Source: Magallana gigas (lineage: Eukaryota). From it: a DNA stretch of 64,000 nucleotides. Made by a program: the position numbers and the translations under genes. Below are positions 1,267-51,300 of the stretch, in pieces (the first letter of the stretch is position 1; each line of letters begins with the position of its first letter). The notes beneath the pieces were generated by a model. It saw nothing but the letters and a program-made list of their open reading frames with translations. It made no database searches and was not told the DNA's origin. The stretch lies in assembly GCF_963853765.1 (NCBI RefSeq), contig NC_088855.1:54560001-54624000 (forward strand). Reading direction: 5' to 3'.

Positions 1267-4042
1267 TCATTGATGCATAGACTTAGAGTTGTATTTCCCT
1301 TTCATAATGAGTTGTCTCAAGAGATCAGGAAATAACTTATACATATAAAACACCATATTCTGCTCTTGGTGTTCTTTTAACTCCTGTGACATATCTCTAT
1401 AATATTCAAAGCTATTCCAAAAGAACAGGACTGAACTTATGAACTGAAAAAAACACCTGTACCTCTTTGTCAAGGTTCCCAAAATAAACAATATATTCCT
1501 GTTTATTTTGTTTAAATTGTATATAAAATTCCTTGAAAGAACTGTTGCAGTGTGCAGGGATTCCAAGTAATTGATGTATGTACATGTACATTAACTTACC
1601 TAGAGAACACTTTGCCTATAGAGGTTCCTAAATGAACATTAAGTTTTCTCCTTGTTTCTGAAAGAAATTTATAAAAAGGTCAAAGATACATCATTGAGCA
1701 TCACCACAACCCCACCCCATCACCACAACCCCACCCCATCCCGATACATACTGCACTTACACCACAACCCCACCCCATCTCGATTCATACCGCACTTACT
1801 CCACAACCCCACCCCATCCCGATTCATACTGCACTTACTCCACAACCCCACCCCATCCCGATTCATACTGCACTTACTCCACAACCCCACCCCATCCCGA
1901 TTCATACTGCATTTACTCCACAACCCCACCCCATCCCGATTCATACTGCACTTACTCCACAAAACTGGTTCCTTATAGTTGACTTCCTGAAGGGAGAGCA
2001 CTTCTCCAGTCTGGAGGTAATGGTGGACCAGGATGTGGAGCCTGGCCTGATTAAGGGTCTCCATGACGACACTGGTCACGGCAGAGTAGTTGGCAAACAG
2101 GTGCAGCAGTGTGAAGAGTAAAAACAAACTCCAGATCAGCCTAAAGGAAACAATCATTTTACCAATACTTGAACAAATTAAGCACTTTTTATCAAATCCA
2201 TTCATTATTCCCGCAAATTTGGGAATAAACTCTATATAGAACTGACAGTTACAGAAAATGTCACTGTCTATCAAGTTCAATGTAAAGTAGATGTTGTTTG
2301 TTCCCAATTTGAAGCAACAAAGACTCACTTACACATCTTTTCCTGTTACAAGAGGAACCAATGTTAAGCTACAGACCAGAGCAGCCAGATTCACTAAGGT
2401 TTCCTAGATTAAAGAATCATTACTAGACACTAGTTCATATAACAATGTGTGAGTTATAATACAGAGGCATTGTGATTTACAGATGATACCAATGAAAAAA
2501 CATACCTGGCTACCATCTTTAGCCGACACGTCGGCCATGTTATTCCTGCGAGCCTGGTGCTGTGTTAGTGCTGCTCTTGTTGCACCCCCTGCAACACCCA
2601 CAATGGACTGTAAATATGGTCAACCACACATCAATCAAAGCAGAGAAATCATCCCAGAAAATTTGAAATGGTTTGTGCAGAACCTCTTATAATACTTGAT
2701 CATAAAAAGTTAAAATGAAAATTGTATTATACTGTACTTTACAAACTCCTGCCGTGCAGACAATAGGGGTGAAATAGGCTTTGAAATATGGTGCTAAAAT
2801 CTCCATGAAAATGGCCATATCATTCAGAATATCTGCAAATAATCTAAAAATAAATCAATATTAAGATTTGTTCTAAAAGATAGAGTAATGAATACTATGT
2901 ATCAAGTATTTTATTTTTACAATCTTAAAAGCTTATAAAAAAAAATATTAAATGTATAATACCTCCATCTTTTGGCATCACAGTCCAAATTGGTTCTAAG
3001 GAAAAGCAGTGTAACCATTAAACACTAAGCAGGCACATTATTTAAGATTAAAATCCATTCAGTTATGAAAGAGAAAACCTTTCATTTAAATTGTACTAAA
3101 CTAATTGTTTAGTCAGCAAAAACTATTAAATCTTTAGATATAAATATTATATACCGGTATATGATAAAAGCATAAACTGTGATGTTAAATCAGACAGGAG
3201 TTAGCCCTTACCCTTGTATCCAAGCGAACAATATTCTACCTATCATCCCAGTCCCATCTGCAAAAATGAATTATGAATCTACCTTTCAGGATAATATATT
3301 CAATGACAAAACCAGTGATATTTAACAGTCATTAACAGAGAGAAAGAGAGAGAGAACCTTTTAAGATCCATGTCAACGTTGCAGCCATGACAGTGGCACT
3401 CTCATCTCCAACACCGACTCCCTTCAGCAAGGCCTGGGCTGCCAGTGTGCCAGTTATACTGCTGGCAAAAGCCTTAGTAAAGAAATATCTTAGCATAGCA
3501 CATTGATTATTTTTCCTGACTATTGCTACGATAAATATGCTGGAAGGCATTACTATTTAATATTCACTATTCAGTGTACCTGGATGGTATCCCATATTTG
3601 ATACTGGAGATAATCAGAACTAACACTCTCTGGGTATCCTTGTGGTAAAAAGACTACCTATAGTGAAAAAAAACCTCAAACATCATTTCATTTTTCAAAC
3701 ATTGATATAGTGTAAAATGTACATGTTAAGTTCATGTTGTTGTCTTGTTTACATCTGTAATCTGCCTAATGAATTTATATGCAAGTTCCAGTAATTTTTC
3801 ACCTTCATTAACTTGTGTTTAAGTCAAATAAGACATTTGCATTTGTTCACTGCATTGATGCGCAAGAACCCCCACCCCCAATCTTACTACAACTCATAAG
3901 TCGAGGAAATTCAAACTACCGTAAAGAACTGAGAGAGTGAGGTCCACTTCGGAGAAAGATCAACTGTCTTCAATTTGTCTTTTTCTGTCTTCACATATTT
4001 CTTAAGGACGTTAGTAGAACCATAAACTTCCTTGCAGACCAT
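1267..4042 (-). CDS. RUSF1: RUS1 family protein C16orf58 homolog, ~370 aa, 12 exons
   Basis: Phase-consistent GT-AG exons: 4042-3920, 3657-3580, 3472-3358, 3257-3212, 2995-2963, 2843-2738, 2607-2506, 2403-2333, 2140-1956, 1657-1600, 1541-1463 and tentative 1383-1267. The translation contains VFLPQGYPESVSSDYLQYQIWDTIQAFASSITGTLAAQALLKGVGVG, DCDAKRWRLFADILND and AGGATRAALTQHQARRNNMADVSAKDGSQETLVNL, which match RUS1/DUF647 proteins. The last exon has a weak acceptor. Confidence 0.9.
1701..1962 (-). repeat. 39-bp minisatellite spanning the RUSF1 exon 9 donor
   Basis: Minus-strand unit TTGTGGA|GTAAGTGCAGTATGAATCGGGATGGGGTGGGG; donor-like GT at 1955, 1916, 1877, 1838, 1799 and 1760; two partial units at 1701-1740. 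Confidence 0.95.
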
Positions 4043-48300: not shown

Positions 48301-51300
48301 CTTGAATCTCTACTATCCGAGGATGTCTCCACACATGCTGCAGCTTCTCTTGATATATAACTTTTGAAAAAATGTCAAAGATTTTCTCTTTTTCTAGTAA
48401 AAATTCACACCCATTGGGGTCCAACTTTACCCTCAGGGATCATGATTTGATCAAACTTGTATCTACACTACCTAAAGTTGCTTCCATCTTGATTTTGAAT
48501 TATTTACCCCTGTGTAAAAAAGGACTGCGAACGATAGCATTGTCTAGCTGCCTAACTAAAAGTCATTTTTTAAAAATTGTCTAATTGATTTTTTTTTATA
48601 ATAATGTAAACATTTATGTATATTTTCATTAAATATAAATGATTTGGTCAAACAAAGAGAGATAACTTTGTATTTTGGGTTAAAATTGCTGTTAGAAAAT
48701 AACGGAAAAACGGAAATGTTTTTAAAACATCTCCCCCCCCCCCCCCCCCGTGAAACAAAAATTCCTTTGGAGAGGTTTGTATACATTGTATACATGTATT
48801 GTTTTTTAACATATTTATACAAAAGTTTGTTGTTTCACGGAGGGAAACATATGTCTACAGACCGAAATACATTCTCCAAAAAAATTTTGCATTGTAAATT
48901 TTCTAAAAATAATTAACAGATATGAATTAAAATGAAATTTTACTTTAATATCTAACGTAAACGTGTGATTATTAAGTTTTTATGCACATATCGGCCGCTA
49001 AATAATATTTTCCCCACTCATAGAGACCGATTTCAATGAATTTTTTTAGACCCCTTGTAAGCAAAACTTGTGTTTAAAAACTGATAATTTGTCTACAAAT
49101 TTAAATTAACACTTGTTCAGGTTTTCAGGCCAAAATTGTTTTGAAAATGAAATTTTAAAAGATTTTACTCTATATATTTCTTTTAAAAAATGCGACCCCT
49201 ATTGTACCCCATACCAACCTTGGGGATCATGGTATGAAAAAATATGAATCTACACTACATGATAATGCTTCCATCAAAGTAACAGCGTTTCTGACCGAAT
49301 GGTTTCTGATAGGAAGTTTTTTGAAAATACGAACAAATTTTCAATAATTATAAATTGTCTCCTCTTAAAAGAGGACGCGGCCCTTCATTTGAACAAAATT
49401 GTATCCCCTTCACCTTTGTGATAATTTTGGTTGAAATAGGCCTAGTGATGGAGAAGATAAAAAGTTTACAATGACGACAGCAACGACAACGACAACAACG
49501 ACAACGACGACAGACAAGGAACAAATTTCGATCAGTAGAGCTCACTTCAACCTTCATGTCAAGTGAGCTTAAAAGAAGAAAGCACCAAAGTTTCAAATTG
49601 TAGTCTAAATCAAAATATGTAAAATAATATTTAGCTAATGTATAGTCCAATTCAATAATATTTTAACCTTACAATATAGAAAATAGATAGTTAACAACTT
49701 TCTTAATTGATTACATGACCTCAATGAACTTAACAACAAGGAAAAAAGACCAATTTGTAAACAAGCCAATGGAATATAAAGGAAAATGTTGTATAAATCA
49801 GGAGTATTTGCCAAAGCACTATCATAAAAATTATTTTTTGCCGATGGTTTAGTCTACATCTGTACCATGAAAGTTGTGATCTTCCATCAAGAACTGACGT
49901 CACTTCTTTGTAGATCTTTTCTTGCTCTTCCGGATATTTGGCCAGGCAGAAGATTGCCCAGCTAATGGCGGATGCCGTGGTGTCATGTCCTAAAAAAGCC
50001 TAAAATCATATCATCTTAGAATTCGAGGATAAGTGGTCAAAGCGTAATATTCAAACAAGAGGACTTTTATTGAAAACGACAAAAATGTAGGTTAACCAGT
50101 TCTTGGCCCAACGTTGCCTCCTGCTCACGGAAGCTTACCTTCATGCTCACGGAAGCTTACCTTCGAACAGAAACGTGTCAACCTCAGCTCTGATATCGAG
50201 GTCACTTAAACCTTCACCATTTTCGTCTTTCGCTGTGATCAAAATGTCCAGAAAATCCAATTTGTTCTTCTGCAGCTGCCCGTGGTTCTTTTCCTACAAT
50301 ATAATGTTAAAAATGCCAGCTTGTTTTCATCATACAACATTCAAATAAAATTATACTGTAACTTCCAAACTTACGACAATTTTCCTGCGAGAGGCGATTA
50401 TTCCATCAGCAAAATCGTGTACATAATCCATATTTCTTTTGTATTCCCTTCCAGTGATGGATAGCCAAAACAGAAAATCAGGGAACAGCCAAGGACTCCT
50501 ACAGATATGAGCGAATTAAGTCAAACCACTAGAACCATTAATATAATCAACAAGGTACTTAAAAAATAACTTACAAAATTCTTCTCAAAGATAAAGACCC
50601 AAGTTTTCGCACAGCACGAACGTATGGATGACTGTCTCTAAAGCACATGAAACAAATATTTACAAATGAAAACTCTGGCTACAAGAAAAGAAAAAAATGA
50701 TAAAAAATTGAAATTGCATTATGTATTTTTCTGCAGTGCTAGCTACCTTCAAATCCGTATAATCGTTTAATTGAAAAGCATTAAATCAAGAGGGTATCAA
50801 ATTGTTTCATTAAATAAATAGCTAGCATACATGTATATTGTCATACGACAGGTTGTGCTTCAGACCAAATACTAACTAGAATTTACCCCATTTCTTGCAC
50901 ATGGCCCTCGTATGACAACGAACATCTTAACATGTTGTCTAGTGTTGCCAGGGAAACATGGCTGTATATTTCAATGTTTTCTCTAGAATCGCACGCTTTC
51001 TGTAGCTTGTCCTGTCAAGAAAAATATTATTAAATAGTTTAGCCAATTGCATGTCTCTTTTTGCAATGCTTATATTCAACACATTAGAACATATTAAATG
51101 GTTGGTTGTAAGCGATTCTTCCAAACCAGTGCATTTCATTTTAGAAACAGTTGTTAAAAGTTATTTGCGTACAAGGAATATTTCTGTGACATCATTATAG
51201 ATCTGTACATATGGTTTGAGAATATCAAAATGGAAGGCGGGGGTCAGCAGCCGACGGTTTCTCTCCCACTTCTTGCCGTCTGATAAAAGCAGTCCATCAC

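Follow-up and report, generated by a model that had tools for sequence, protein, structure and literature searches.

Tandem arrays that reiterate splice sites at exon-intron junctions of the oyster Magallana gigas

Why do introns of several genes in one short stretch of oyster DNA begin or end in tandem copies of their own splice site? The stretch in question, hereafter the window, is the 64,000 nucleotides (nt) of Magallana gigas contig NC_088855.1 from position 54,560,001 to 54,624,000, and belongs to a genome of 564 Mb in 29 contigs. A preliminary description had claimed five tandem arrays in it, at junctions of RUSF1, SULT, PES1 and two CYP4 genes (CYP4-1 and CYP4-2), each with a unit made of a few exon bases, the splice dinucleotide and the neighbouring intron. 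Using Tandem Repeats Finder (TRF), which was applied to the window and to an independent sample, we recovered all five where they had been described, and reading of the sequence bore out the make-up of the unit in every one. The individual arrays are members of the known class of junction-spanning minisatellites, and we lean towards reading them as tolerated intronic minisatellites of the type found in intron 7 of human F7. A further array in PES1, absent from the preliminary description, was also detected. The features are listed here with the evidence used for each.

1699-1962, minus strand: donor array of RUSF1 (TRF, sequence, open frame, RNA joint, donor tracking, own-genome search, one-unit allele)
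18252-18472, plus strand: acceptor array of SULT exon 3 (TRF, sequence, Pfam profile continuity, locus-specific unit)
23869-23947, minus strand: second array of PES1 (TRF, sequence, distance test)
25176-25287, minus strand: acceptor duplication of PES1 (TRF, sequence, PES1 domains, locus-specific unit)
39100-39731, minus strand: donor array of CYP4-1 (TRF, sequence, Pfam, own-genome search, orthologous locus in related species)
50122-50164, minus strand: donor duplication of CYP4-2 (TRF, sequence, Pfam)

Splice-site arrays in five genes of the window

According to TRF, each of the five consists of head-to-tail repeats of a 10- to 100-bp unit in an intron, as do the 16 arrays of the sample of myosin genes considered below. 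The first unit of a donor array, or the last unit of an acceptor array, spans the exon-intron boundary, so that the array repeats the splice site. From locus to locus the units are unrelated in sequence and in length, and across 19 arrays the exon share of the unit runs from about 5% to 86%, with the junction at no fixed offset. Searches of the oyster's own genome covered four arrays (RUSF1, SULT, PES1 25176-25287 and CYP4-1, leaving aside the 22-bp unit of CYP4-2), and each of the four units was found at its own locus only. Being unique to their loci, these units were copied from the local junction rather than brought in by a repeat family, and we rejected a dispersed-repeat origin for the four.

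In RUSF1, identified by its match to PF04884, TRF reports a 39-bp unit in 6.2 copies with 96% identity at 1723-1962, carrying six donors (GTAAGT or GTAAAT). A 19-bp repeat in 2.2 copies (1699-1740) overlaps the array region and contributes no donor. The unit holds 4 nt of exon and 35 nt of intron, and its junction, marked here and below by a slash, reads GTGGA/GTAAGTGCAG. The G of the true donor lies at 1955 and the last exon base at 1956, in an exon that spans 1956-2140, a placement that corrects the preliminary description. The next exon occupies 1600-1657, and the intron between them (1658-1955, 298 nt) is nearly all array. RUSF1 is the one locus of the five with RNA data on splice-site use, drawn from one contig set and from a raw-read run sampled at 1%. 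A spliced contig (depth 51) and a single raw read show the joint 1657 to 1956, which uses the exon-proximal donor, the first of the six. No joint from any other donor was listed in the contig set or in the 1% sample, where raw-read depth is below 1 and minor use could escape. Splicing from a later donor would add 13 in-frame residues per unit (SKCSMNRDGVGLW), the frame being open through the array. For RUSF1, the public ab-initio proteins (P0001, P0002 and P0003) run on through the intron, and one of them enters the first array unit.

Copy number was compared between individuals at the RUSF1 locus. L051, a Logan contig of the same species but another individual, has one 39-bp unit followed by the 19-bp duplication, against six units in the window. 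L050, which comes from a close relative whose protein is 97% identical, has one unit and lacks the 19-bp duplication. These one-unit contigs indicate that the ancestral RUSF1 intron measured about 82 nt and that the six-unit array is derived and polymorphic. One could argue that the arrays are assembly errors, or that the junctions have been misplaced. Indeed, short-read contigs break in the RUSF1 array in the two DNA runs that hold it and give no copy count, so that the number of copies rests on the assembly. However, they break exactly at the array edges, and a 61-mer internal to the array (1827-1887) was found in an independent DNA run. The single-unit contig reads straight through, so a collapsed assembly is unlikely. 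Moreover, the CYP4-1 array recurs in a related species, in contigs assembled independently, and the RNA joint together with Pfam profile continuity fixes the junctions. An artefact is thus a very improbable explanation, already largely refuted.

The remaining loci repeat this anatomy with other sequences. The SULT array has a 34-bp unit in 6.4 copies, each joining about 11 nt of intron end (ttttacAG) to about 23 nt of exon start (ttttacag/TTGACT). Exon 3 begins at 18467; exon 2 ends at position 134 of the Sulfotransfer_1 profile and exon 3 starts at 135. Four decoy acceptors retain ACAG, and their use would lead to a TGA within 6 codons. In PES1, recognised by its Pescadillo_N and BRCT domains, the acceptor repeat consists of 2.0 perfect copies of a 55-bp unit (tttcag/AGA), with the acceptor AG at 25180-25179 and the first exon base at 25178. 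The upstream copy of the acceptor would add 55 nt, with a TAA at the 7th codon. The second PES1 array (40 bp, 2.0 copies, 79% identity) begins 3 nt past the donor GACTCGG/GTAGGT and is junction-adjacent, not junction-spanning. CYP4-2 carries 2.0 perfect copies of a 22-bp unit, TGAAG/GTAAGCTTCCGTGAGCA, at the donor TGAAG/GTAAGC, whose G lies at 50160, in an intron of only about 147 nt. The exon ends at p450 profile position 274 and the next one starts at 274; the second donor would add 22 nt and place a TGA in the 4th codon.

In CYP4-1, TRF delimits the array at 39352-39709, with a unit of 43-47 bp, and degenerate copies reach back to 39100. The array comprises at least 10 degenerate copies, each with about 15 nt of exon end (TGGCCCGACCACATG), a donor and intron. 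The junction reads CACATG/GTAAGT, with the G of the true donor at 39730, and the copies read CACATGGTATGT; the exon ends at p450 profile position 379 and the next starts at 382. At 39223-39352 the array is interrupted by an element of about 130 bp, which is dispersed through the genome (more than 2000 candidate copies, 91-94% identity) and entered the array after it had formed. Contigs of a related species, with 91.6% identity in the exon and about 81% in the flanking intron, likewise carry an array of at least 9 units at this junction. Shared with a relative and interrupted by a transposon, the CYP4-1 array shows that such arrays can last long. The neighbouring paralogue CYP4-2 has no array at the junction that matches it. 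Taken together, the arrays range in age from newborn (the perfect duplications of PES1 and CYP4-2) to older than a species split (CYP4-1).

These results agree with the earlier claim that the exon-proximal site gives the intact protein, by the RNA joint in RUSF1, by Pfam continuity in SULT, CYP4-1 and CYP4-2, and by reading frame and homology for the PES1 acceptor. The effects ascribed to the extra sites also stand: they stay in frame in RUSF1, and a stop follows within 2-7 codons in SULT, PES1, CYP4-1 and CYP4-2.

Three other places in the window deserve mention. On the minus strand at 56990-57100, upstream of CYP4-2 exon 1 and about 17 kb from CYP4-1, there is an isolated copy of a CYP4 exon end with a GTAAGT donor and about 60 nt of intron resembling an array unit. 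It appears to be a fragment of a CYP4 junction region copied to a second place. Downstream of the RUSF1 exon at 1600-1657, positions 1-1000 reach DNA and RNA depths in the hundreds to thousands, numerous loose ends lie at 936-971, and the region is a high-copy repeat. Finally, a gene at 7265-8716 (minus strand) encodes a VWA domain and two chitin-binding Peritrophin-A (CBM_14) domains, an architecture reminiscent of Pif-like shell-matrix proteins.

Density of junction-spanning arrays in an independent sample

Since the window was picked after the fact, the weight of the density test rests on an independent sample of 17 regions of 10 kb (170 kb). Its sole selection criterion was the presence of myosin-head exon hits, and repeats were disregarded. 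We took arrays with a period of at least 10, of which TRF found 77, and curated the junction calls by eye, backed by the myosin-head exon hits. Sixteen arrays span 15 junctions (11 donors and 4 acceptors), and seven more are junction-adjacent, beginning or ending 3-17 nt from a junction that they do not contain. Of all arrays, about 20% belong to the spanning class; at TRF scores of at least 100 the share is about 36%. The class occupies about 4% of junctions (15 of ~340-440). The rate in the window, 5 of ~125 junctions, is the same; the window is typical of this genome, not exceptional.

The hottest gene of the analysis is a myosin-V-like gene, L038 (1000-7400 of its region; G000:C1:75376000-75382400, plus strand). 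Spanning arrays occupy 8 of its ~18 junctions, within nine consecutive introns over 6.4 kb, and one more junction has an adjacent array. Its arrays differ in age, with unit identities of 67-98%; examples are a 63-bp unit ending FIGVLDIYG/GTGAGT, a 47-bp unit (ATATG/GTAAGT) in 12 copies, and an acceptor array reading tttgtag/GCCATTGGTAATGCC. Intron 2 of this gene (352 nt) consists almost wholly of a donor array and an acceptor array. Elsewhere in the sample, L037 has a unit ending VLEAFG/GTAGGT. In L036 (722-1020; G000:C7:45899222-45899520, minus strand), a myosin gene has, between two IQ-motif exons, an intron that consists entirely of a 96-bp unit in 3.1 copies with 95% identity. Each unit joins 20 nt from the end of the exon, with the donor, to 76 nt of intron.

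Expected counts were obtained from a neutral model in which small duplications arise uniformly and survive if they are wholly non-coding or straddle a junction. For an array of period p, the model puts the probability of including a junction at 2np/(2np + V - np), in a region with n exons and a length V of sequence that is neither coding nor array. The exon annotation behind these counts is approximate. A first coding classifier (order 3) proved too unspecific and was replaced by a self-trained order-4 version, which recovers roughly half to three quarters of exons and was used for within-region permutations and exon counts only. Thirty loci of intronless kinase genes were used only for training the coding model.

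Several results weigh against reading the arrays simply as tolerated minisatellites that arise evenly along genes. The 17 regions hold 16 spanning arrays against a neutral expectation of 5.5-6.5 (P 5e-5 to 3e-4, and still ~1e-3 if exons were under-called by a third). In an annotation-free permutation within regions, 11 arrays lay no more than 12 nt from a coding-like interval, compared to 2.1-2.2 expected, and 0 of 500 permutations reached 11. The distance profile places this excess only within 12-25 nt of coding edges, with no gradient beyond. L038 carries 8 spanning arrays where 1.4-2 were expected; junction arrays have a median of about 5 copies, in comparison with about 2-3 for other arrays; and donors outnumber acceptors 14 to 6. 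The uniform neutral model predicts none of these features, be it the excess, the boundary spike, the L038 cluster, the higher copy number or the donor bias. In the window itself there are 5 loci against 1.0-1.35 expected. When L038 is set aside, the count falls to 8 against 4.2-5.1 expected (P 0.05-0.12), a weak excess, and the spike amounts to 6 arrays at 12 nt (1.5 expected) and 10 at 25 nt (3.1 expected). Overall, the excess is about 2-3-fold, real but modest, sharply localised and concentrated in hot genes.

Could a process that targets junctions have produced it? On this account, the boundaries of germline-transcribed genes would be prone to small tandem duplication, especially in some genes, with polymerase pausing or R-loops at splice sites, or filled-in staggered breaks, as possible causes. 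We hold it to be possible, though doubtful. It would explain the excess in the independent sample and the spike near coding edges, which is kept without L038, and it sits well with eight more arrays that exclude the junction but have an edge 3-17 nt from it. The different ages of the L038 arrays speak of repeated births in one gene, and the perfect two-copy duplications of PES1 and CYP4-2 show microhomology of 0-2 nt, a pattern that resembles fill-in or end joining more closely than it does repeat slippage. However, the excess is modest and hangs on an approximate exon annotation (8 against 4.2-5.1 without L038), the breakpoints are scattered relative to the splice site, and a higher rate of exonic duplication or locally hot regions would give the same pattern with no link to splicing. 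The features that the neutral model leaves over may stem from a junction-targeted or transcription-linked mutational bias, from a higher exonic duplication rate of which only junction-straddling products survive, or from locally hot regions.

The junction-biased duplication put forward in the preliminary description therefore receives partial statistical support, from the count of 16 and the spike within 12-25 nt, but this support is weak without L038, and nothing links the excess to splicing, R-loops or repair.

We also searched the whole genome for three GGTAAGT motifs spaced 10-60 nt apart. There were 1531 matches, compared with 422 when the motif was reversed as a control, and the test was rejected as junction evidence. 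The ratio is uninformative on junctions because the listed matches are mostly dispersed satellites of 33, 41 and 44 bp at many loci. The 33-bp satellite (GGTAAGTAAATGGTCCGAGGGGCTTATATCAGC) forms long arrays at G000:C1:936074-936377, 1093722-1094124, 3617591-3617993, 3705397-3706789 and 3820172-3820739, and the 41- and 44-bp satellites likewise start with GGTAAGT and are dispersed. All three are probably transposon-borne and unrelated to junctions.

Tolerance and possible function of the decoy sites

The reading that we prefer, of tolerated minisatellites, can be laid out as follows. An array would be born as a small tandem duplication (~20-100 bp) whose ends chance to straddle an exon-intron boundary, and may then grow by slippage or unequal exchange on the intron side. 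The spliceosome would keep to the exon-proximal site, which is the first of the donors or the last of the acceptors, leaving the mRNA unchanged and the extra sites as silent decoys. From then on the array would drift neutrally through growth, polymorphism, decay and transposon insertion, as new arrays are born elsewhere. The 2-3-fold excess would in this case reflect local mutational heterogeneity, that is, hot genes, and not a dedicated mechanism.

Minisatellites occur in these genes at about one per 2-3 kb and junctions at about 2 per kb, with many short introns. Arrays of this kind are frequent in this oyster because both are dense, and with such densities about 7-8% of arrays are expected to include a junction by neutral geometry alone. 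The density of minisatellites, the density of junctions with their short introns, and the harmlessness of straddling duplications as long as the exon-proximal site is chosen together account for most of the phenomenon.

The fate of the decoys bears on the same point. We tracked decoy donors over eight donor arrays, in two of which, short and degenerate, unit tracking is unreliable: G at +1 is kept at a frequency of 0.75 and T at +2 at 0.88, against 0.68-0.90 at neighbouring positions. Both purging and special conservation of the decoy GT were rejected, since decay matches that of the neighbouring bases. This neutral decay, the scattered position of the junction in the units and the polymorphism of RUSF1 all fit tolerance. 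The preliminary description had offered tolerated decoy sites as an alternative, and that alternative is well supported by the same observations, by the RUSF1 RNA spliced at the first donor and by an individual that lacks the array.

Alternatively, the decoys might have been selected for a function. They could recruit U1 or U2 components, tune splicing or nonsense-mediated decay (NMD), lengthen very short introns, or supply isoform ladders from in-frame units such as those of RUSF1. It is true that most decoys retain sites of consensus quality, that the RUSF1 units are in frame and open, that the CYP4-1 array persists across species and that junction arrays have more copies than other arrays. 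Against these stand the absence of the RUSF1 array from another individual and a relative, decoy GTs conserved no better than their neighbours, units that share neither sequence nor length across loci, and a paralogue, CYP4-2, with no array at the junction where CYP4-1 has one. Use of decoys to tune splicing or NMD was not seen in the RUSF1 RNA data either, where no decoy joint appears, at a depth too low to exclude it. We regard selected function as improbable, and it is the least supported of the readings with a biological content that we weighed.

Relation to known systems and significance

Single minisatellites that reiterate a donor, as in human F7, IFI6 and CBS, are classic but rare tools for studying site choice by the spliceosome. 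The closest parallel is the minisatellite of human F7 intron 7, a 37-bp unit in 5-9 copies, the first of which spans the exon 7 donor. Experiments showed that splicing there relies on the most upstream donor alone, the decoys being identical and silent (PMC1557585). LMNB2 and PDGFA also splice from their most upstream donor (PMC1557585). RUSF1 resembles F7 in its head-to-tail array, in the few exon bases and donor of the first unit, in the use of the first of six donors and in its polymorphic copy number, with one allele that lacks the array. The human cases, however, are rare and confined to a handful of genes, whereas in the oyster about 4% of junctions are involved, several of which can share a gene, and acceptors as well as donors. 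In the junction minisatellites of human IFI6 (6-16) intron 2 and CBS intron 13, the two decoys nearest the exon are also used, constitutively (PMC1557585). Those are many-copy, donor-reiterating arrays like the oyster ones, but their proximal decoys are used, while the RUSF1 RNA data, of low depth, gave no sign of decoy use.

Small tandem duplications within genes have also been linked to changes of intron structure: cases of intron sliding or gain through tandem duplication of splice signals are described from Drosophila (PMC2891723). The oyster arrays similarly copy splice signals and are potential raw material for a shift of site or a new intron. They differ in that the oyster introns predate their arrays and the original site is still used in RUSF1, with no sliding or gain shown. 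A tandem-array origin of human introns was reportedly proposed by Zhuo et al. in 2007. For RUSF1 we rejected intron gain by tandem duplication, as its intron (~82 nt) exists with no array in L050 and L051. The SULT and CYP4 introns lie at continuous profile positions, and the CYP4 positions are common to the paralogues. As for the oyster's own transposon-borne satellites, they too consist of tandem units of tens of bases, are common in introns and in some cases contain GGTAAGT by chance, but their units occur at many loci, unlike the four tested array units, each confined to its own junction. Reports of junction minisatellites at genome scale or in bivalves were not found in the literature, within a search of incomplete coverage.

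The arrays have consequences beyond the loci described. Where their frame is open, junction arrays can put false peptide repeats into protein databases, and they mislead gene predictors. If about 4% of junctions in the oyster genome carry arrays, they would reveal a visible route by which short introns lengthen, as the RUSF1 intron did from 82 nt to 298 nt, and would offer a testable case on whether mutation is biased towards splice junctions. Our tentative estimate leaves some room for exon-intron boundaries in this oyster being true hot spots for small tandem duplications, tied to germline transcription or splicing and recurrent in particular genes such as L038; if so, they would be a major driver of intron growth and a source of thousands of natural decoy-site arrays. 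At a rate of about 4% of junctions, the arrays would also amount to thousands of natural, polymorphic experiments on splice-site choice, at donors as well as acceptors.

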